From assembly GCA_965113315.1 (NCBI GenBank), contig OZ220364.1: a stretch of 64,000 bases of DNA; one strand, 5' to 3'. The stretch comes from Podarcis vaucheri (lineage: Eukaryota). How positions within the stretch are numbered: position 1 is the stretch's first letter; each line of letters begins with the position of its first letter. Under the pieces are notes generated by a model. That model worked only from the letters and a program-made list of their open reading frames with translations. It was not told where the DNA came from and did not search any database. Of the stretch, positions 10,160 through 35,162 are shown one piece after another. The position numbers and the translations under genes were made by a program.

Positions 10160-10358
10160 GAAGATAGGATGCTGCTTTATACTGAATCCTTACACTATTG
10201 GTCCATCCAGGTTAGTATTGTCCACACTGACTGGCAGTGGCTCTCCAGGATTTCAGACAGGGATATTTCCTTATGCTACTTGGAGATACCAGGGATCGAA
10301 CCTGGATTCTTGGGCATGCAAAACAAATGCTCTACCACTAAGCTACAAGCTGTCCCCC
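10160..10358 (-). mobile_element. Squam3-like SINE
   Basis: Reverse complement of the 6721 family, including GTAGCTTAGTGGTAGAGCA and GGTTCGATCCC. Confidence 0.8.
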
Positions 10359-14078: not shown

Positions 14079-15416
14079 GTCTGACATCAATACCAGGGAA
14101 GATTCTGGAACAGATCATTAAGCAAACAGTCTGTGAGCACCTAGAAAGGAATGCTGTGATCACCAATAGTCAGCATGGATTTCTGAAAAATAAGTCATGT
14201 CAGACTAACCTGATCTCGTTTTTTGACAGAATTACAAGCCTGGTAGATGAAGGGAACGCAGTGGATGTAGCCTACCTTGATTTCAGCAAGGCATTTGACA
14301 AGGTGCCCCATGATATTCTTGTAAAGAAGCTGGTAAAATGCGGTCTTGACTATGCTACCACTCAGTGGATTTGTAACTGGCTGACTGCCCGAACCCAAAG
14401 GGTGCTCATCAATGGTTCCTCTTCATCCTGGAGAAGAGTGACTAGTGGGGTGCCACAGGGTTCTGTCTTGGGCCCGATCTTATTCAACATCTTTATCAAC
14501 GACTTGAATGATGGACTCAAGGGCATCCTGATCAAATTTGCAGATGACACCAAACTGGGAGGGGTGGCTAACACCCCAGAGGACAGGATCACACTTCAAA
14601 ACGACCTTGACAGATTAGAGAACTGGGCCAAAACAAACAAGATGAATTTTAACAGGGAGAAATGTAAAGTATTGCACTTGGGCAAAAAAAATGAGAGGCA
14701 CAAATACAAGATGGGTGACACCTGGCTTGAGAGCAGCACATGTGAAAAGGATCTAGGAGTCTTGGTTGACCACAAACTTGACATGAGCCAACAGTGTGAC
14801 GTGGCAGCTAAAAAAGCCAATGCAATTCTGGGCTGCATCAATAGGAGTATAGCATCTAGATCAAGGGAAGTAATAGTGCCACTGTATTCTGCTCTGGTCA
14901 GACCACACCTGGAGTACTGTGTCCAGTTCTGGGCACCACAATTCAAGAAGGACACTGACAAACTGGAACGTGTCCAGAGGAGGGCAACCAAAATGGTCAA
15001 AGGCCTGGAAACGATGCCTTATGAGGAACGGCTAAGGGAGCTGGGCATGTTTAGCCTGGATAAGAGGAGGTTAAGGGGTGATATGATAGCCATGTTCAAA
15101 TATATAAAAGGATGTCACATAGAGGAGGGAGAAAGGTTGTTTTCTGCTGCTCCAGAGAAGCGGACACGGAGCAATGGATCCAAACTACAAGAAAGAAGAT
15201 TCCACCTAAACATTCGGAAGAACTTCCTGACAGTAAGAGCTGTTCGACAGTGGAATTTGCTGCCAAGGAGTGTGGTGGAGTCTCCTACTTTGGAGGTCTT
15301 TAAGCAGAGGCTTGACAACCATATGTCAGGAGTGCTCTGATGGTGTTTCCTGCTTGGCAGGGGGTTGGACTCGATGGCCCTTGTGGTCTCTTCCAACTCT
15401 ATGATTCTATGATTCT
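14079..15416 (+). mobile_element. 5'-truncated CR1 LINE (ORF2 RT plus 3' UTR), young
   Basis: ORF 14156-15340 has [27 protein letters not shown] and [11 protein letters not shown]. The 3' end is CTTCCAACTCTATGATTCTATGATTCT (CR1 octamer tail). Candidate TSD AGGGTC at 14076-14081 and 15417-15422. Confidence 0.96.
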
Positions 15417-15900: not shown

Positions 15901-16503
15901 CTGTATGGAATCTTATTTTTCCCCCATGCAACTAGAAGAATTAAAAAGGGCAAAATTTGCAAAGGCTGCTGGTGGGATTGCAGAATCACAGTGATTTTTT
16001 TAGGATGGGAAATGTCATCCATTCCTTTCAGTAGGAACCATGTTGGACAGTACCTTTTTTCAGACCAACTGAATGTCATCAAATAGTGACAAACTGATGA
16101 ATTCTCCAGAACTCAGGCAAAATGTTACATGCCAGATGGAGTAAATACTCTGTGTACCTCCACCTCTATTGTCAGTACTACTTTGTGACATTTTGGTTGC
16201 TCTGAATAGGTATTGGGGATCTTAGAGCCACCTATGCTTTTCATGAAACACTATTCCTATCCTTGTTACTGCTTCCTTCATAGACCATTTCTTCTCTGCT
16301 TCATGTGCTTATCTAAAGCCCAAATCATCCCTCCTGCAGGAAAGTCCAGTGCTGATTTGATGACCTCAACATGGCTAGAGAATCTCTATTGGAAACCACA
16401 AGACCTTTGATAGTTTCCCAGCATTCTGTGAGGTAAGGAAAAGCATGGGACGGGGCTAACAACAACAACAACAATATTCATACCCTGCCCCTTTGGCTGG
16501 GTT

Positions 16504-18522
16504 TCCAATGAGACGGAAACATGGAAGGTGCCTAAAGAAGCCAGGGTGGCTATCTAAAGAACTTTTAACTGAGTTAAGATTAAAAAAGGATGTGTACAAA
16601 AAATGGAAAAGGGGAGAAACCACCAAAGAGGAATTCAAACAAATAGCCAGCACATGTAGATACAAAGTCAGAAAAGCTAAAGCACAGAATGAACTCAGGC
16701 TTGCTAGAGAGGTTAAAAGCAACAAAAAAGGCTTTTATGGGTATGTTCGTAGCAAAAGGAAGAACAAAGAAACAGTGGGGTCACTCAGAGGAGAAGATGG
16801 AGAAATGCAAACAGGGGACACAGAAAGGACTGAACTCCTCAATGCCTTCTTTGCCTCAGTCTTCTCCGATAAAGAAAACAATGCCCAACCTGAAGAATTT
16901 GGAGCAAATGATTCAGCAGAGGAAACACAGCCCAGAATAACTAAGGAGATAGTACAAGAATACTTGGCTAGTTTAGATGTATTCAAGTCCCCAGGGCCAG
17001 ATGAACTGCATCCAAGAGTATTAAAAGAACTGGCAGATGTGATCTCAGAACCACTGGCAGTCATCTTTGAGAAATCCTGGAGAACAGGCGAAGTCCCGGC
17101 AGACTGGAGGAGGGCAAATGTTGTCCCTATTTTCAAAAAGGGGGAAAGAGAGGACCCAAATAATTACCACCCAGTCAGTCTGACATCAATACCAGGGAAG
17201 ATTCTGGAGCAGATCATTAAGCAAACAGTCTGTGAGCACCTAGAAAGGAATGCTGTGATCACCAATAGTCAGCATGGATTTCTGAAAAATAAGTCATGTC
17301 AGACTAATCTGATCTCGTTTTTTGACAGAATTACAAGCCTGGTAGATGAAGGGAACGCAGTGGATGTAGCCTACCTTGATTTCAGCAAGGCATTTGACAG
17401 GGTGCCCCATGATATTCTTGTAAAGAAGCTGGTAAAATGCGGTCTTGACTATGCTACCACTCAGTGGATCTGTAACTGGCTGACTGACCGAACGAACCCA
17501 AAGGGTGCTCATCAATGGTTCCTCTTCATCCTGGAGAAGAGTGACTAGTGGGGTGCCACAGGGTTCTGTCTTGGGCCCGGTCTTATTCAACATCTTTATC
17601 AACGACTTGGATGATGAACTCAAGGGCATCCTGATCAAATCTGCAGATGACACCAAACTGGGAGGGGTGGCTAACACTCCAGAGGACAGGATCACACTTC
17701 AAAACAACCTTGACAGATTAGAGAACTGGGCCAAAACAAACAAGATGAATTTTAACAGGGAGAAATGTAAAGTATTGCACTTGGGCAAAACAAATGAGAG
17801 GCACAAATACAAGATGGGTGACACCTGGCTTGAGAGCAGTACATGTGAAAAGGATCTAGGAGTCTTGGTTGACCACAAACTTGACATGAGCCAACAGTGT
17901 GACGCGGCAGCTAAAAAAGCCAATGCAATTCTGGGCTGCATCAATAGGAGTATAGCATCTAGATCAAGGGAAGTAATAGTGCCACTGTATTCTGCGCTGG
18001 TCAGACCTCACATGGAGTACTGTGTCCAGTTCTGGGCACCACAGTTCAAGAAGGACACTGACAAACTGGAGCGTGTCCAGAGGAGGGCAACCAAAATGGT
18101 CAAAGGCCTGGAAACGATGCCTTATGAGGAATGGCTGAGGGAGCTGGGCATGTTTAGCCTGGAGAAGAGGAGGTTAAGGGGTGATATGATAGCCATGTTC
18201 AAATATATAAAAGGATGTCATATAGAGGAGGGAGAAAGGTTGTTTTCTGCTGCTCCAGAGAAGTGGACACGGAGCAATGTATTCAAGCTACAAGAAAGAA
18301 GATTCCACCTAAACATTAGGAAGAACTTCCTGACAGTAAGAGCTGTTCGACAGTGGTATTTGCTACCAAGGAGTGTGGTGGAGTCTCCTTCTTTGGAGGA
18401 CTTTAAGCAGAGGCTTGACAACCATATGTCAGGAGTGCTCTGATGGTATTTCCTGCTTGGCAGGGGGTTGGACTCGATGGCCCTTGTGGTCTATTCCAAC
18501 TCTATGATTCTATGATTCTATG
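16504..18522 (+). mobile_element. 5'-truncated CR1 LINE with frameshift (ORF2 pseudogene)
   Basis: ORFs 16493-17548 and 17505-18443 are collinear CR1 ORF2 (KSPGPDELHPRVLKEL, DWRRANVVPIFKKG). They are split by a 4-bp duplication (GACCGAACGAACCC, ~17486-17499). FADD has become SADD. (ATTCTATG)n tail. Confidence 0.96.
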
Positions 18523-24972: not shown

Positions 24973-26568
24973 TGAAGTGGGTTATAGATGCAACTCAACT
25001 AGCCATCGCTCAGTGGATGAATCCAAGCAGTATCTACATACCCAGGCCCAACATCTTCTGCCTAAGGATTCTGGTTTATCAGAGATGAAGAAGATTCCTC
25101 CTGCCAATTAGGTTAAACTTGAATAAAGCACAGAGTGGCTTGGCAATATGGCTAGATGGCAGGGCCGGCCCAAGAACTTTTAGTACCTGAGGAAAACCAC
25201 AAAATGGCATCCTCCTCCCCACCTGGGAAGAAGGGCTGAGTGAATATCTACATCAGGAACAAGTGGGGAATAAGGATCTGTATTAGGATCTAGTGCCCCT
25301 GTGGGTTCTGCTGTCCAAGGCAGTCGCCTGACCTTGCCTCATGGGTTGGTCAGCCCCACCAGATAGAAAAGTAGATGTCATTGTATGAAAAGAATAACAT
25401 TAAAAGGATGGTGGGGAAAAGGTTCTGAGTCTTGGGAAGTATGAGTCTAGACTGGGGAAAGGCCAGGATGAAAGGCATGGTTACCTTTACACTGCAGGAA
25501 AGATACTTTTCTGTTCTAACTAGCCTCAGTACTATTTAGAGCTCTGCCTAGTACTTTTATGAGAGGTACTAGAAAACCAGGACACTTCATATATGCTATT
25601 GACAAAGATCAAGTGCTTATAGCTCAGAACAGTAACTGAATATGGTGAGCTAGTTCCACTTCCACAAATCCAATATGGAATCCTTTCTGGCATCAATTAG
25701 TGCATAGATTACCATTCTCATTCTCCCTGTATGGACAGCCAGAAGGTCACATAAGCACCAATACAGAGTATATTCCTAGGTTAGGGAATTGATTCCTATA
25801 GATCGAAATGTTCAGCACTGCAGACATATGAAAATAAAAAGAATTAAAAGGGGGGCATTTACCATGCTCTTCTTATGCCCTGAAATTAAGGGTCTCAGGA
25901 GCCAGACTGGTCTATATGTGTATCAGTGTTTCCATAGGTTGATTAGAATCAAACAATCAAGACCAAAAGCATTGTTGCTAACAAAAATTAGTCCCATTTC
26001 AATCAATTGCACTCTTGCATGTCCTGCTAAGGAGGCCTTTCAGACAGCTTGATCATTTATGCAAAGATCAACAATACCTGTAAATTGTTAAATGCACACG
26101 TCTGTCACATATAAGAAAGAAAACGGAGCAAGAACACTACTAAATAACTGAATAATTGAATGCATTGCCAAGACTTCAAGCATTAAAGAAATTCTTTAAT
26201 CTCCCAAAATTCAGTTTCATTGGAGAGCTCCAAGTTCTAATGTTATGAGAGAGGGGAAACAAATTATCTGCACTTTCTACACACTATGAATATAAGCAAC
26301 CCACAATCCTCCCTCCATGACCCATTCATGGAATCCTGATCAGACATATGGCTTATGTGGGTAGACCACACACATGGGTAGAAGTTTGTGGGTCTGTCTG
26401 CAAATCAGCTGATGAGAAGACCACATTTAGTTATGTTATTGGTCACCGCTACCTTTTGCTGACATGCCCCCATGGGCCTGAGAATTATTTTCAACATGAT
26501 GGGGCACCTGCCATGCTCATTTTCTGTCCCAGTCTTGCATGTGCAGAGCTGTCATGCCAACACGTCTC

Positions 26569-26879
26569 TGTTGATATAGCAGAGTCCATTTGCACAACGG
26601 AATGATGAATAGTACGTGCCACATGCTTTTTGTTGCTTTATTTACAGTTCATTGTAGAGAAATTACAAACTTGCATCTTGCCTCTGCTGGAGCAGAGAAG
26701 CAACCTTCCTTCTCCTCGGACTAACGAACAAGAGAGAACAGTGAAAAACAGGAAACCAGTGTACGTCACATCCAGCTTCCCATTCCCGTGTGAAAACCCA
26801 ACAGTGCTCTGACTGTGGAATGTAAACATTGTCTTGTGACAAGCACTTTGCTGCACAGTGAAGAGAGCAGAAACCAACA
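26569..26879 (-). repeat. 3' LTR of the copia element
   Basis: 311-bp copy of 31258-31568. The track reports the same spurious 60-aa ORF in both LTRs (26630 and 31319), consistent with identity. Confidence 0.97.
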
Positions 26880-26893
26880 TCCTCCCCCTTTCT
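26880..26893 (-). promoter_or_regulatory. Polypurine tract of the copia element
   Basis: Minus strand AGAAAGGGGGAGGA directly abuts the TG start of the 3' LTR. Confidence 0.92.
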
Positions 26894-26926
26894 GTGAACA
26901 TCACTGGGCAGCGTGTTCGTACAATA

Positions 26927-29900
26927 TCAGTACAAACCCAACTTCTGTACATAGGTACAGTGTTGATCCCTTGATACAATCTTGGACAATACATCAGCAG
27001 GAATTTCATTACCTGGCATATAGGACACCGTTACGAGTCCCTTCTGAATATGTTCCCTAGCATGTTGCACCTTCAACTGCAAGTGCTTCGTGCTTTGCTT
27101 ACAACCTTCCGAATTCAGCAAAGCCAAACATGCTTTGTTGTCCTGGTAAACCTGGATTGGACATTTGACAGGAATTTTCATGTCTTTGCACAATTGTAAC
27201 AACCATTCACAATCCTTAAGTGAATAAGACAGTGCATTCAGTTCAGCTTCACAAGTACTTAAGCTAATTGTTGTTTGCTTCTTGCATGACCAATCAAATA
27301 GACCCTGATTGTACATGTAGCAAACTCCAGACGTACTTTTCCTGTCTGTAGTGTCACTTCCAAAACTTGCATCTGCAAAAATCTCAAGACCACCAGACTT
27401 CTGATTGTTAAATCTCAGTCTGTAATGCATAGTGCCTTTCAAATAGCGTGCTATGCGTTTCAGAGCTTTCCAATCCTTAACAGTAGGATTGTTAACTTGT
27501 CTGCTTAGCAAATTACAGCTAACAGCAATGTCAGGTCTTGAACATCTGGCAATGAAGTTTAGCTTGCCTAGCACACTTCTGTACAGTGTAGTGTCAGAAA
27601 ATGCTTCTTCAGTGTCTTCTACCTGATAACCTGTTGTCATTGGTGTGTCTACAGGGTTAGCATCCATCAGGTTCAGTTTGCTTAACACATCAGCAATTTT
27701 CCTTGACTGGTGTACTAGAATGTTACCACTTTGATCTTTCTCTATTTCCAGAGATAGGTAGTTGTTTACCTCACCAAGATCTTTCATGTCAAAGTGCTCT
27801 TTCAGTTGAGCTAGGGCATTATTGTACATTGTGACATCTTTCCAAAAGAATAAAATATCATCAACATAAAACAAACAATACAGCTTCTTTTGCCCCTCCT
27901 CTTTGACAAATACACATGGATCAGCTTTCCCTTGCTTAAAACCTAGAGAAAACAATGCTTCAGTGAGTTTTGTGTGCCAACACCGTGCACTTTGTTTGAG
28001 ACCATAAAGGGACTTTTTCAGAGCACAAACAAATCCCTGTTTTACCTGTACGCCATCAGGTGGAAGCATATAAAGTGATTCACCTAGAGATCCGTACAAA
28101 AACGCTGTATTTACATCGTGGTGACTAATGTGTAGATTCTCCTCTGCAGCTAGCTTGAGCATAAGCCTAATGCTCTCATATCTCACCGTGGGTGAGTAGG
28201 TCTCGTGATAGTCTTCACCTGGTACCTGTGCAAAACCTCTGGCTACCAATCTGGCTTTGTGTCTGACTATCTTGCCATTTTGATCAGTCTTCGCTTTGAA
28301 GACCCATTTGCTTCCAAGCAGTTTCATTCCTGGAACTACTGGAACTAGTTCCCAAGTTTTGTTCCTTTCTAAGGAATCAAGCTCAGCCTTCATGGCATTT
28401 AACCATGGCTCAGCTTCCTTAGAATCCAAATCCTGGATTTCTTGGAAACTTGAAGGTTCAAATACCTTCTTGGAGCTTTTAACAGCTGCTACTGCTGTCT
28501 TAGCAAATTCATCAGCAAATCTCTTTGGAGGTCTGCCTTTTGTGGCTCTTTGTGACCTGCGAATTAGCCTTTGGTCTTCAACACTTTCCTCTTCCTTCTT
28601 AGGAGAAAAGTGACCTATTGTGAACAATGGTTCTTCCAATTCCTGATCAGAGCTTTCAGAGGGTCGCATAGAGGCTTTCGCACTCTTGAAATCCTCTGAC
28701 TTATCCGAATCAGTTTCAGACTCAGAATCAGAACCTTCATCAGTGGGTGTGGGTTGCTGTTGCTTATCCTCAGTCTCATCACTGTCATCAGGATAACATT
28801 GAAAAATTCCCACGTTCTCCCCCCACTTGGCATTGTACTCAACACTTCTTGTGAGCCTAATTGTCTTGGAGTCAGACATCATTATTCTGTAAGAACCTTT
28901 CTGATAACCTAGAAAGATACCATGCAATCCACGTTTGCCTAATTTGGAGCTTTGTGGTGAGTGAATCCACATATCAGAACCAAAAATTCTCATGTGTTTG
29001 ATGTATGGTTTCTTACCAAACATCTTCTCATAGGGGGTACAACCAATCGCTGAAGATAACCTGCGATTGTAACTGTAAAGAAAACACGAGAGAGCTTCGG
29101 CCCAATAACTCTCTGGAAGATTGGCATCATGCAGCAAGGTCTTTAACCCTTGAAGCAATGTTTGATTTGCCCTTTCGCAAAGCCCATTCTGCCATGGCGA
29201 GCGAGGACTGGACAAATCGTGTTGAATTCCTTTCTCAGTCAGAAAAGCTTCAAACTGCTGAGAAGTGAATTCTCCCCCGCGATCAGTGAAAAGAGTTTTT
29301 ATCTTCTTACCATGCACATTTTCTAACCAAGCACAGAATTCCTTAAACCTTGGAAAAGCCTCTGATTTCTGCTTGAGATTGTACACATAAATATACCTGG
29401 AAAATGCATCAATGAGAACCATGAAGAACTTATTGCCACCTATAGAGGGCGATAGTGGACCAACTAAATCAGCATGAACAATCTGGTATGGTTCTGTAGC
29501 TTGCCTACTAGACACCTTACCTTTCGCAGCCATTTTCACCTTGTTTGCTGCGCATGCCTTGCACTTCATGTGGTACCTGCAGGGTTTAATAGTCATACCT
29601 TCAACCAAGGTAGGCATTTTAGATACTGCCTCAAAATGCAAATGACCAAATTTTCGGTGAAAATCATGAATACATTCTGCATGCAAACTTTTGTTAGAAC
29701 CTGCAATGCAACAAGTGTCATTCTGCACAACATCATCATAATACAAAACAAACAAACGATCAACACATTCAGCATGCAACACATAATCGTTTTTCTTTGT
29801 GATGGTGCACTTCTTGTTCTTGAAGGACACGTCAATGTTCCGTTCATTCAGCTGCATCACACTTAGAAGATTGTGTGTGGCATCTGGAACATAAAGTACA

Positions 29901-30925
29901 TCATGTATCTCTAAGTCCAAACTGTGAAGAACAACAGTTCCGTAGCCTTGACTGGGGATCGTGTGGTCATCCGCCTGGTGAATCGCACCTTCCTGCGGTG
30001 TAAAAGACACGAACAGTCTCTTGTCGTTGCACATGTGGTGGGTAGCTGCTGAATCAACAACGAAGAAAGATCTAGACGTCTTCTGGACCTTTGCAACCTT
30101 TGGAGTGAAGCGTGAGACCATTGCCTTGTGCTGCGTTGTCCTGGAGACCGGACCTTTGCCTTTGCTTTGGCCTTTTCCACGCGATGAGCTTCCGCTGCGC
30201 TGCTCTGTCTTGGCCCTGGGATATTTGCATTCCCTCTTCATATGGCCTAGACGTCCACACGAGTAGCATTTCACTGCCTTCAAAGCTTTGGCGCCCTCTG
30301 GTGGTTCCACTGCACTCTGGGATGACGTCTGTGAAGACTCCCCCTTACCCATGCAGCTAGCACCCCGGCGATCTGCTTCATTCTGGACCACGGCAGTAAC
30401 ATAGGCTACTGTGAGCTGAGCAGTTGGTTGAACAGCAATCTGAGTGGCAACGGACTCCCAACTTGGACCCAAAGAATGAAGTATCATGAAGGAATACACA
30501 GCCTCTGGAAAGTTGAGTCCTCTCTGCTGCAACTCATGTCTCAGATTTTGCATCTCCATCAGGTGTTTACGCACATCTCCACCTTCAGCAAGAGCCATAT
30601 CATGCAGCTTGGCATAGTAGTACATTGAGGAACCAGCCTCTGTCCTCAAGTGAGCCTGTCTTAAAGAGTCCCAAATTTCTCTGGCTGTGGTCTTTCCACG
30701 CAACAGACAGAGCTCTTCTGGGGATACTATCAACGTAAGCGTTCCCCTTGCTTTGGAATCCTTAGCATTCCAATCAGCTGTAATTGGAGCTGGGGGGTTG
30801 TCTGTAATCACATTAAACAGACCTTCTTTCCGCAGAACTGCCTCTGCATATAACACCCACTCTGTGTAATTATTCTTATTGAGCTTAGGAATCCCAAAAG
30901 CATCAACCAGCTTTGCGTTTGCCAT
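26927..30925 (-). CDS. Copia Gag-Pol polyprotein (1332 aa from the first in-frame ATG, MANAKLVDAFGIPKL)
   Basis: Gag N-terminus IPKLNKNNYTEW. CCHC knuckle CYSCGRLGHMKREC (~30227-30268). Protease FVVDSAATHHM (DSAA ~30044-30055). Integrase HHCC (HRKFGH...CKAC), DDE core (VHADLVGP, TDRGGEF, NGLCERAN) and GKGY-like SKLGKRG...FLGY. RT with KARLVARGF, LKKSLYGLKQS and YVDD (~27857-27868). RNase H FADAS...RKSTSG...STCEAE...QDN...ADVLSK. The track start at 31060 is a TTG. Confidence 0.97.
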   Translation of the reverse strand: MANAKLVDAFGIPKLNKNNYTEWVLYAEAVLRKEGLFNVITDNPPAPITADWNAKDSKARGTLTLIVSPEELCLLRGKTTAREIWDSLRQAHLRTEAGSSMYYYAKLHDMALAEGGDVRKHLMEMQNLRHELQQRGLNFPEAVYSFMILHSLGPSWESVATQIAVQPTAQLTVAYVTAVVQNEADRRGASCMGKGESSQTSSQSAVEPPEGAKALKAVKCYSCGRLGHMKRECKYPRAKTEQRSGSSSRGKGQSKGKGPVSRTTQHKAMVSRFTPKVAKVQKTSRSFFVVDSAATHHMCNDKRLFVSFTPQEGAIHQADDHTIPSQGYGTVVLHSLDLEIHDVLYVPDATHNLLSVMQLNERNIDVSFKNKKCTITKKNDYVLHAECVDRLFVLYYDDVVQNDTCCIAGSNKSLHAECIHDFHRKFGHLHFEAVSKMPTLVEGMTIKPCRYHMKCKACAANKVKMAAKGKVSSRQATEPYQIVHADLVGPLSPSIGGNKFFMVLIDAFSRYIYVYNLKQKSEAFPRFKEFCAWLENVHGKKIKTLFTDRGGEFTSQQFEAFLTEKGIQHDLSSPRSPWQNGLCERANQTLLQGLKTLLHDANLPESYWAEALSCFLYSYNRRLSSAIGCTPYEKMFGKKPYIKHMRIFGSDMWIHSPQSSKLGKRGLHGIFLGYQKGSYRIMMSDSKTIRLTRSVEYNAKWGENVGIFQCYPDDSDETEDKQQQPTPTDEGSDSESETDSDKSEDFKSAKASMRPSESSDQELEEPLFTIGHFSPKKEEESVEDQRLIRRSQRATKGRPPKRFADEFAKTAVAAVKSSKKVFEPSSFQEIQDLDSKEAEPWLNAMKAELDSLERNKTWELVPVVPGMKLLGSKWVFKAKTDQNGKIVRHKARLVARGFAQVPGEDYHETYSPTVRYESIRLMLKLAAEENLHISHHDVNTAFLYGSLGESLYMLPPDGVQVKQGFVCALKKSLYGLKQSARCWHTKLTEALFSLGFKQGKADPCVFVKEEGQKKLYCLFYVDDILFFWKDVTMYNNALAQLKEHFDMKDLGEVNNYLSLEIEKDQSGNILVHQSRKIADVLSKLNLMDANPVDTPMTTGYQVEDTEEAFSDTTLYRSVLGKLNFIARCSRPDIAVSCNLLSRQVNNPTVKDWKALKRIARYLKGTMHYRLRFNNQKSGGLEIFADASFGSDTTDRKSTSGVCYMYNQGLFDWSCKKQTTISLSTCEAELNALSYSLKDCEWLLQLCKDMKIPVKCPIQVYQDNKACLALLNSEGCKQSTKHLQLKVQHAREHIQKGLVTVSYMPGNEIPADVLSKIVSRDQHCTYVQKLGLY

Positions 30926-31239
30926 TTTCTGCTGCTTAAAACAAGCTGCGTCACAGTCCTGCAGCTTCAGCCAAAAGCACTTGTAAAAGTACTTTCGATT
31001 TCCCCAGCCATCCAAGCCTGTTAGCTTGTGCCTTTTGGAGCCTTGCCTGTAACACGGCAAAACGGCTTTAAAAGTTCAAAGTCCAGCAATAAAACCATAA
31101 ACTAGTAGCTGGCAGGCTGCCAGGCTGCTCCGGGAGAATGAGCACATACCTTCATCAATCAAACTTGACGCGCAGAGCAGATAACGCGATCCGTTCCTCT
31201 GTACCTCTGCCGGCATTCCTCAGTTTGATTTACGTCTTT

Positions 31240-31254
31240 CTGGGCCCGGAACCA
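31240..31254 (-). promoter_or_regulatory. Putative primer-binding site (half-tRNAiMet-like variant)
   Basis: Minus strand reads TTT-TGGTTCCGGGCCCAG right after the 5' LTR. This is a 12/14 match to GGTTATGGGCCCAG, the complement of the tRNAiMet anticodon arm used by Drosophila copia. Confidence 0.7.
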
Positions 31255-31257
31255 AAA

Positions 31258-31568
31258 TGTTGATATAGCAGAGTCCATTTGCACAACGGAATGATGAATA
31301 GTACGTGCCACATGCTTTTTGTTGCTTTATTTACAGTTCATTGTAGAGAAATTACAAACTTGCATCTTGCCTCTGCTGGAGCAGAGAAGCAACCTTCCTT
31401 CTCCTCGGACTAACGAACAAGAGAGAACAGTGAAAAACAGGAAACCAGTGTACGTCACATCCAGCTTCCCATTCCCGTGTGAAAACCCAACAGTGCTCTG
31501 ACTGTGGAATGTAAACATTGTCTTGTGACAAGCACTTTGCTGCACAGTGAAGAGAGCAGAAACCAACA
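31258..31568 (-). repeat. 5' LTR of the copia element
   Basis: 311 bp with TG...CA ends and terminal inverted repeats TGTTG/CAACA. Minus-strand AATAAA and a CRE-like TGACGTA. Matches 26569-26879 with no difference seen. Confidence 0.97.
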
Positions 31569-32016
31569 GTCTCACCAGCACTAAAAATCCACTTCAGCAT
31601 GTTCATATTAATTTGTTTAACATTCGCTTACAGCCATTCTGAGGCATTAATTAAATGCCTTTTAAAAGTTCAGTGACGTAAAATGTACTCGAGTGGGAAC
31701 AAAATGATCTGACCTCGACCTCTGCAGACAAGGAAAATCAAATTCAGCGTCATCTGGAAAATTTGGGATTGCCTTTAGGCCATCAGTCGTTCCTTCATAA
31801 CGTCACTTCAGGTGGAGGTAAGTGAGCAGTAAGCCTGCAGACTAGAAAGTCCTACTGTCGTCTATTTCATGCCTGGCATTGCCTTCTTCAGGGCACAAGA
31901 AGAACTGGGGATCAACACTCCCCCAACCAATTCAACAAGACCCTCTCTATTTAGAGACTCACTCAAATTCAGGCTGGGCTCAAAAGACTACCACAGTTCT
32001 TTAGCCAGCCCTAGTC

Positions 32017-32819: not shown

Positions 32820-33060
32820 ACTGACTGACTGATTGGTTGATTGATTGCATTTATATCCTACCTTTTTCTCCAAGGAGTCTAAGGTATCTTACATGGTTCA
32901 CCCCTCCTCATTTAATGCCCACAAAAACCCTGTGTGGTAGATCAGGCTGAGAGACAACAACTGACCCAAAGTCCCCCAGTGAACTTCTTGGCTGAGCTAG
33001 GATTTGAACCTTGGTCTTCCAGGACCTAGTCTGACACACTAGCCACTGTGCCACACTGCT
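32820..33060 (-). mobile_element. Older MIR/CORE-like SINE
   Basis: (GATT)n tail, CCCACAAAAACCCTGTG...GCTGAGA...CTGACCCAAAGTC...GATTTGAACC B-box and CCACTGTGCCACACTG head. Confidence 0.65.
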
Positions 33061-34688: not shown

Positions 34689-35086
34689 CCTCCTCCTCCT
34701 CCTTCGGCAATCACTTGTAGCCGAGTAAGATTGTCTTCCATAAACACGGTTTTAACAGTGAGTCCGTAAATGACTGTGGAGGCCAATTCTGGATCCACAC
34801 GTCCTTCCACAGTGGGGACATTGGTTTCCGGGTGGGAATTGATCACAGTGTGGATTTGCCAAGCGTGCCTTCCTCCTAGCACTTTTCTCCCTTGCATCCT
34901 GAGTTTGAGTATCTTCAAAACCCATGACACCTTTGGTAAAGGCTGTTCTCCAACTGGAGCGCTCACAGGCCAGTGTTTCCCAGTTGTCAGTGTGTAGACT
35001 ACATTTTTTTAGATATCCCTTGAGACAGTCTTTAAACCTCTTTTGTTGACCACCAGCATTACGCTTTCCATTTTTAAGTTCAGAAT
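34689..35086 (-). mobile_element. RTE-clade LINE 3' end with C2H2 finger, inserted in a MITE
   Basis: ELKNGKRNAGGQQKRFKDCLK...WETLACERSSWR...CPHCGRTCGSRIGLHSHLRTH. (GGA)n tail. Imperfect TSD ATGCCTTCT/ATGCTTTCT at 34680-34688 and 35087-35095. Confidence 0.88.
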
Positions 35087-35157
35087 ATGCTTTCTGAGGC
35101 TGATGGGTTTTGTAGTCCAAAACACCTGGAGGACAGCAGCTTGGGGAAGGATTGTGC

Positions 35158-35162
<5 letters not shown>

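Follow-up and report, generated by a model that had tools for sequence, protein, structure and literature searches.

Structure and coding capacity of the element

A 64,000-nucleotide (nt) stretch of DNA from the lizard Podarcis vaucheri (contig OZ220364.1 of assembly GCA_965113315.1), referred to here as the window, carries a Ty1/copia long terminal repeat (LTR) retrotransposon of exactly 5,000 bp at positions 26569-31568, on the minus strand. An earlier description of the element made from the letters alone (the sequence-only reading) had listed two identical LTRs, a target-site duplication (TSD), priming sites and one long open reading frame (ORF). All of these structural claims stood, with one correction: the ORF runs from 30925 to 26927, on the minus strand, which makes the right-hand LTR, 31568..31258, the 5′ LTR. 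The features of the locus, in window coordinates, are as follows.

26564..26568, no strand: TSD GTCTC, left copy, from the sequence; the 5-letter ambiguity of the empty-site joint (see below) is this TSD
26569..26879, minus: 3′ LTR, 311 bp, with TGTTG...CAACA termini; 0 mismatches to the other LTR
26880..26893, minus: polypurine tract (PPT) AGAAAGGGGGAGGA, directly abutting the 3′ LTR, from the sequence
26927..30925, minus: single ORF for Gag, protease (PR), integrase (IN), reverse transcriptase (RT) and RNase H (RH), 1,332 codons plus stop, from ORF translation and Pfam
26966..27388, minus: RNase H region, about residues 1180-1320, DAS..E..D..D, from alignment and motif positions; 79% identical to the fragment P0235
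27635..28363, minus: reverse transcriptase RVT_2, residues 855-1097; Pfam E 2.7e-69 over the full-length profile
27857-27868, minus: YVDD motif of the reverse transcriptase, from motif position
28832..29755, minus: integrase, residues 391-698, with HHCC zinc region, DDE core and SH3-like C-terminal domain; Pfam gag_pre-integrs, rve, rve_3 and SH3_retrovirus
29837..30064, minus: aspartic protease (Pol_BBD), residues 288-363; Pfam E 3e-19
30044-30055, minus: protease active-site motif DSAA, from alignment with relatives
30224..30271, minus: CCHC zinc knuckle, residues 219-234; Pfam zf-CCHC, E 1.3e-5
30362..30844, minus: copia-type Gag (Retrotran_gag_2), residues 28-188; Pfam E 7e-28
31240..31254, minus: candidate primer-binding site (PBS) TGGTTCCGGGCCCAG, 3 nt downstream of the 5′ LTR, from position and sequence
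31258..31568, minus: 5′ LTR, 311 bp; 0 mismatches to the other LTR
31569..31573, no strand: TSD GTCTC, right copy, from the sequence; the empty site carries one GTCTC

Alignment of 26569-26879 with 31258-31568 gave 0 differences, bearing out the mismatch-free 311-bp LTRs of the earlier description, and the identity ends precisely at both LTR boundaries. The perfect GTCTC duplication was likewise found, at 26564-26568 and 31569-31573. The minus-strand frame is the sole long ORF of the element and, counted from its ATG, runs for the expected 1,332 codons with no stop. Of the priming sites, the PPT adjoins the 3′ LTR, and the PBS is a candidate assigned by its position 3 nt after the 5′ LTR. The flanks of the element are unique within the window, and no other copy or fragment of it was found elsewhere in the 64,000 nt.

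Pfam matches along the ORF come in the order Retrotran_gag_2, zf-CCHC, Pol_BBD, gag_pre-integrs, rve (residues 477-577), SH3_retrovirus and RVT_2, and the RNase H motifs begin after residue 1183. Every key motif named in the sequence-only reading was located (CCHC, DSAA, HHCC, D-D-E, YVDD and the RNase H acidic residues). The arrangement is that of Ty1/copia: the order is PR-IN-RT-RNase H with the integrase upstream of the reverse transcriptase, the reverse transcriptase is of the RVT_2 type, the Gag is copia-type, the LTRs end in TG...CA and the TSD is 5 bp long.

Drosophila copia has the same plan, with a single Gag-PR-IN-RT-RH ORF, a 5-bp TSD, a length of ~5 kb and short LTRs with TGTTG...CAACA ends, as in the window element; the polyproteins of insect relatives are, by contrast, about 28-36% identical to that of the window element. 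The primer of Drosophila copia is an internal fragment of initiator tRNA-Met. The candidate PBS presumably resembles this half-tRNA-iMet site, matching it at 12 of 14 positions and differing at the two that would pair with the anticodon. No complement of at least 8 nt to the PBS region was found anywhere in the element. An AATAAA at 26637-26642, within the 3′ LTR, is a predicted poly(A) signal by consensus match. In the 5′ leader, inspection by eye picked out, on the minus strand, an AAG|GTATGT resembling a splice donor (31150 downwards) and a TTACAG|G resembling an acceptor (31047), which would bound a putative intron of ~100 nt in the 5′ untranslated region (window 31047-31149, minus).

Filled and empty sites and the copies of the family

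The sequence-only reading had predicted an empty allele of the form ...CCAACAC-GTCTC-ACCAGCAC..., and this allele is present in public reads. Four public read runs were placed on window positions 26100-32000, among them those coded X1 (organism A) and X4 (organism C). A contig from X1 joins 26563 to 31569, skipping 5,005 letters with a 5-letter ambiguity and leaving a single GTCTC, the pre-integration site. The flank contigs of the same run differ from the window at 0 of 469 letters and at 1 of 432, and X1 therefore comes from the same species as the window. In X4, one 1,825-nt contig crosses the same empty joint with 13 differences in 896 flank letters (1.45%), a divergence that identifies X4 as a close relative without the insertion. 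Because precise excision of LTR retrotransposons does not occur, the empty site represents the ancestral state. It follows that the insertion is young and unfixed, as the inference of insertion polymorphism had anticipated, with empty-site contigs from the species of the window and from a close relative.

The X1 individual may itself be heterozygous. Its left-flank contig stops precisely at 26568 and shares 30 letters with the empty-site contig, fitting a filled/empty branch; its right-flank contig, however, continues straight through the empty junction. A single-nucleotide polymorphism at 31599 (A on the filled haplotype, G on both empty haplotypes, from organisms A and C) is in phase with the insertion and, lying 26 bp past the right TSD, is usable as a marker. 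For the age of the insertion, 0 differences in 2 × 311 bp give a bound of less than about 2-6 million years (Myr), assuming 0.8-2.4e-9 substitutions per site per year.

The element belongs to a family that is highly repeated. In X1 and X4 alike, the element has a summed word depth of 1e5-5e5 and the flanks one of about 100-140, roughly a thousand-fold difference; this summed contig depth, which is not a formal copy number, indicates on the order of a thousand copies. In X1, 3,701 of the 8,148 contigs placed are at least 99% alike; the high share at that threshold in X4 says little, as most of its contigs are only about 100 nt long. Some part of the element is held by 20 runs from 11 coded organisms in 12 studies. 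The small run of organism K has internal pieces that are 3-6% diverged and no LTR pieces. Internal 'skip' joints starting from 26968 were considered as deletion derivatives and were not used, their short side being only 20-25 letters.

At five positions (27077, 28868, 28876, 29345 and 30479) the window copy has a minority letter where nearly all other contigs agree on another. Four of the five differences are synonymous, which would arise by chance with a probability of 0.009-0.05, a figure limited by the fact that the listing tool had chosen the sites. The mostly synonymous pattern fits several lineages diverging under selection to stay functional. The minority letters also argue against a collapsed consensus and so bear on the possibility that the identical LTRs and the open frame are artefacts of assembly, produced by collapse or polishing of many near-identical copies. 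A highly repeated family is indeed a setting in which short-read assembly makes chimeras. Several minority letters are, however, unexpected in a collapsed consensus, the junctions are clean, the perfect TSD matches an independently observed empty site, and the left-flank contig of X1 ends at 26568, just where a real filled/empty branch would end it. We therefore regard an artefact as very improbable.

Relatives, phylogeny and the protease motif

The exact polyprotein is absent from a collection of 15 billion proteins. Similarity searches covered protein collections of 5.8 billion sequences and of 1.84 billion cluster representatives. The best whole-length relative, P0001, comes from a European Nucleotide Archive (ENA) contig and is about 57% identical overall and 70% in the RT-RNase H part. 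The only closer match is the 286-amino-acid (aa) Logan fragment P0235, which is 79% identical, and beyond these two all relatives lie at or below about 41% identity. The nearest named proteins are from the lizard Elgaria, spiders, a pseudoscorpion, Anopheles darlingi and Trichuris. Scans for close relatives returned one match at 31%, from a plant metagenome, among metagenome contigs, and none among viral contigs.

In a 'quick' tree of the RT-RNase H segment, whose sequences include no named reference elements, the window element, P0235, P0001 and the Elgaria sequence P0277 form a clade with 100% support in the Shimodaira-Hasegawa-like approximate likelihood ratio test (SH-aLRT), on a long stem. 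This clade is nested in a second one (99% SH-aLRT) with elements of Anopheles darlingi (P0137), a spider, a pseudoscorpion and a nematode, apart from the plant elements. P0277, from Elgaria multicarinata LOC134395383, is thus the nearest named relative in this segment. It is nevertheless only about 41% identical to the window element by BLASTP, and its annotation is that of a chimeric gene model with LINE-type (long interspersed nuclear element) domains as well. The tree topology fits long residence in squamates. The reference element of the Mtanga clade of Copia is from Anopheles gambiae.

These relationships bear on a possible horizontal acquisition, which the sequence-only reading had raised and which found no support here, the nearest named relative being the element of another lizard. 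A recent arrival of the family from an arthropod or another donor could be argued from the fact that, this one lizard sequence apart, it is arthropods and a nematode that supply the nearest named relatives (36-41% identity); horizontal transfer has also been discussed as a possible factor in the distribution of the Mtanga clade (PMC11889832). Against such an arrival are the fully supported clade with an anguid lizard sequence and its long private stem, the lack of any donor-like protein above 57% whole-length identity in either of the large collections searched, and the presence of the family in many related lizard runs. Recent acquisition from such a donor is, on this evidence, barely credible.

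The protease active site departs from that of the nearest relatives, with DSAA in the window element and DSG in P0001 and P0200. Among 224 related polyproteins the motif is DSG in 193, DSA in 15 and DTG in 13. The DSA carriers are intact polyproteins in three groups that are mutually only 43-65% identical, and the tree of related polyproteins implies ~11 state changes to DSA. DSAA as proof of a dead protease was accordingly rejected, since DSA recurs in diverged intact lineages. Judged from these comparisons, DSA is a tolerated natural variant, compatible with long-term function. The same motif is the starting point for another explanation of the locus, in which the window copy is structurally intact but non-autonomous and would be moved in trans by the proteins of other copies, either because DSAA weakens its protease or because of some other subtle defect or the odd PBS. 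The prevalence of DSG, both in the closest relatives P0001 and P0200 and in 193 of 224 relatives, speaks for this explanation, and a family of about a thousand copies would make complementation in trans easy. The retention of DSA in three intact and diverged groups, with its ~11 origins, speaks against it, as does the integrity of all remaining catalytic motifs, and we consider a non-autonomous window copy doubtful.

Probable activity, squamate precedents and neighbouring features

Together, these results lead us to read the element, with a probability of roughly 0.85, as a full-length, coding-competent copy of a high-copy Ty1/copia family in a lacertid (Podarcis-like) genome, a family that would fall in the squamate part of the 'terrestrial' radiation of metazoan copia, known in the literature as the Mtanga clade. 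By what is established for Ty1/copia elements, transcription would start in the 5′ LTR and reach the poly(A) signal of the 3′ LTR, and a single Gag-PR-IN-RT-RH polyprotein would be translated and then cut by the protease. Reverse transcription would be primed at the PBS, by the 5′ LTR, and at the PPT, by the 3′ LTR, which would leave the two LTRs identical, and insertion of the DNA by the integrase at a cut staggered by 5 bp would account for the GTCTC duplication.

Several observations weigh against this reading. The copy estimate and the LTR age bound carry the limits given above, and the protease motif is not that of the nearest relatives. Membership in Mtanga is drawn from a tree without the Mtanga reference and from the literature. 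No tRNA partner for the candidate PBS was found in the window, where ARAGORN calls no tRNA gene. Expression is the remaining point: in the single-cell RNA (scRNA) run X23 (organism C), 232 of 17.8 M reads fall on the element, on both strands, and only 19 of them reach 99% likeness; 43% extend beyond it into unlike sequence, and the main peak, at 27479-27872, has a T>A change at 27617 that is absent from the window copy.

Some family members are therefore transcribed, at least as parts of other transcripts. The X23 peak at 27479-27872 is on the plus strand at a depth of 11-13, with 27617 T>A in 14 of 16 reads, the strand given being that of the reads as sequenced; in organism C, an expressed transcript thus seems to contain another copy of the family.

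The reads bear on whether the family is alive. It could be inactive and the window copy a leftover polymorphism, up to a few Myr old, whose frame is intact for lack of time; a large population, incomplete lineage sorting or introgression between closely related lizards would have kept it segregating. LTR identity permits ages up to about 2-6 Myr, the reads include no clear full-length sense transcript, and the window copy departs from the family majority at several sites. Yet the coexisting filled and empty alleles have near-identical flanks, which differ at 1 of 901 letters, contigs at least 99% alike number in the thousands, and the differences from the majority, being mostly synonymous, do not follow a pattern of decay. 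An inactive family is in our view quite unlikely. The family, not necessarily the window copy, has probably transposed very recently and probably still does.

The sequence-only reading had called the element autonomous and possibly still transposing. An open frame with all its motifs, LTRs without a difference and an unfixed insertion agree with the first part, whereas transposition at present is only plausible, because the few RNA reads map to both strands and most of them stem from other copies. A broader proposal, for which we see the chances as evenly balanced, is that a Copia family of ~thousand copies is transposing now in lacertids, with segregating insertions, a DSA protease and a PBS that departs from the classical half-tRNA-iMet primer, and that it possibly feeds parasitic derivatives lacking the reverse transcriptase. 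If the family is transposing now, natural lizard populations would be a tractable system for live Copia activity in amniotes. To our knowledge, mammals and birds are without copia elements, so squamates are the amniotes in which the superfamily can be studied alive. The filled/empty polymorphism of an intact copy offers a concrete marker locus in lacertids, a major model for speciation, introgression and colour polymorphism, and Copia is a likely source of structural variation in this group.

That copia is poorly studied in reptiles, a premise of the sequence-only reading, is outdated (PMC11889832, PMC11948899, PMC4657000). Among the 263 metazoan genomes surveyed in a 2025 study, 23 of 24 squamates had Copia, and no other metazoans reached such copy numbers; numbers were very high in 13 squamates, and snakes averaged >2,500 copies, with ~7,000 in one species (PMC11889832). 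Mtanga was the only copia clade reported in Lepidosauria, and 90% of its clusters were squamate (PMC11889832). The squamate Mtanga elements of the survey are, like the window element, Ty1/copia elements of lizards and snakes; they are recent enough for their LTR pairs to be recognisable and often number hundreds to thousands of copies (PMC11889832). The clade of the window element in our tree includes an Anopheles polyprotein, and the closest protein to the window element is only about 57% identical over the whole length.

The corn snake supplies a published precedent for recent Copia activity in an amniote, likewise with near-identical copies and new insertions segregating within a species. 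There, the same 5,832-bp Copia is inserted in OCA2 (amelanism) and in CLCN2 (Stripe), the two insertions differing by one nucleotide, and the genome holds 85 Copia copies at >95% identity, for which the authors suggested current activity (PMC4657000, PMC11948899). Its authors found copies only in Pantherophis and Pituophis and defined the family by >5,000 of 5,832 bp at >95% identity (PMC11948899). At exactly 5,000 bp the window element falls outside that definition; it is set apart from the 5,832-bp element by description, not by sequence, and the lizard insertion, unlike those of the corn snake, has no phenotype linked to it. In the literature searched, no lacertid Copia family or insertion polymorphism of one is described, and Podarcis genome papers give the total LTR content without an analysis of Copia. 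The element is thus probably new for lacertids, the first specific record from them in that literature, and of a kind already known. The general picture is unchanged because the abundance and recent activity of squamate Copia had already been published.

Elsewhere in the window, positions 14156-15337 hold a CR1-type reverse-transcriptase ORF whose identity to proteins of Podarcis muralis is 96-97%, to those of Anolis 75-80% and to turtle and bird proteins 50-70%. This marks the genome as that of a lacertid, either Podarcis or a near relative, in agreement with the squamate origin that the sequence-only reading had assigned to the DNA. CR1-type LINE reverse-transcriptase ORFs of nearly the same sequence occupy 14156-15340 (394 aa) and 16493-18443 (351 + 312 aa) on the plus strand and have the look of a pair of young CR1 copies some 2 kb from each other, with a break of frame in the second. 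Weak Rfam tRNA matches at 32989-33060 and 10287-10347, both on the minus strand, barely exceed the gathering score, at 32.7 and 31.4 bits, and are not among the ARAGORN calls; they are probably heads of tRNA-derived short interspersed nuclear elements and not tRNA genes. A 135-aa ORF at 34752-35159 (minus) has no Pfam match and ends in a zinc-finger-like CxxC...HxxxH tail; it may be what is left of the C-terminal end of a LINE ORF2.

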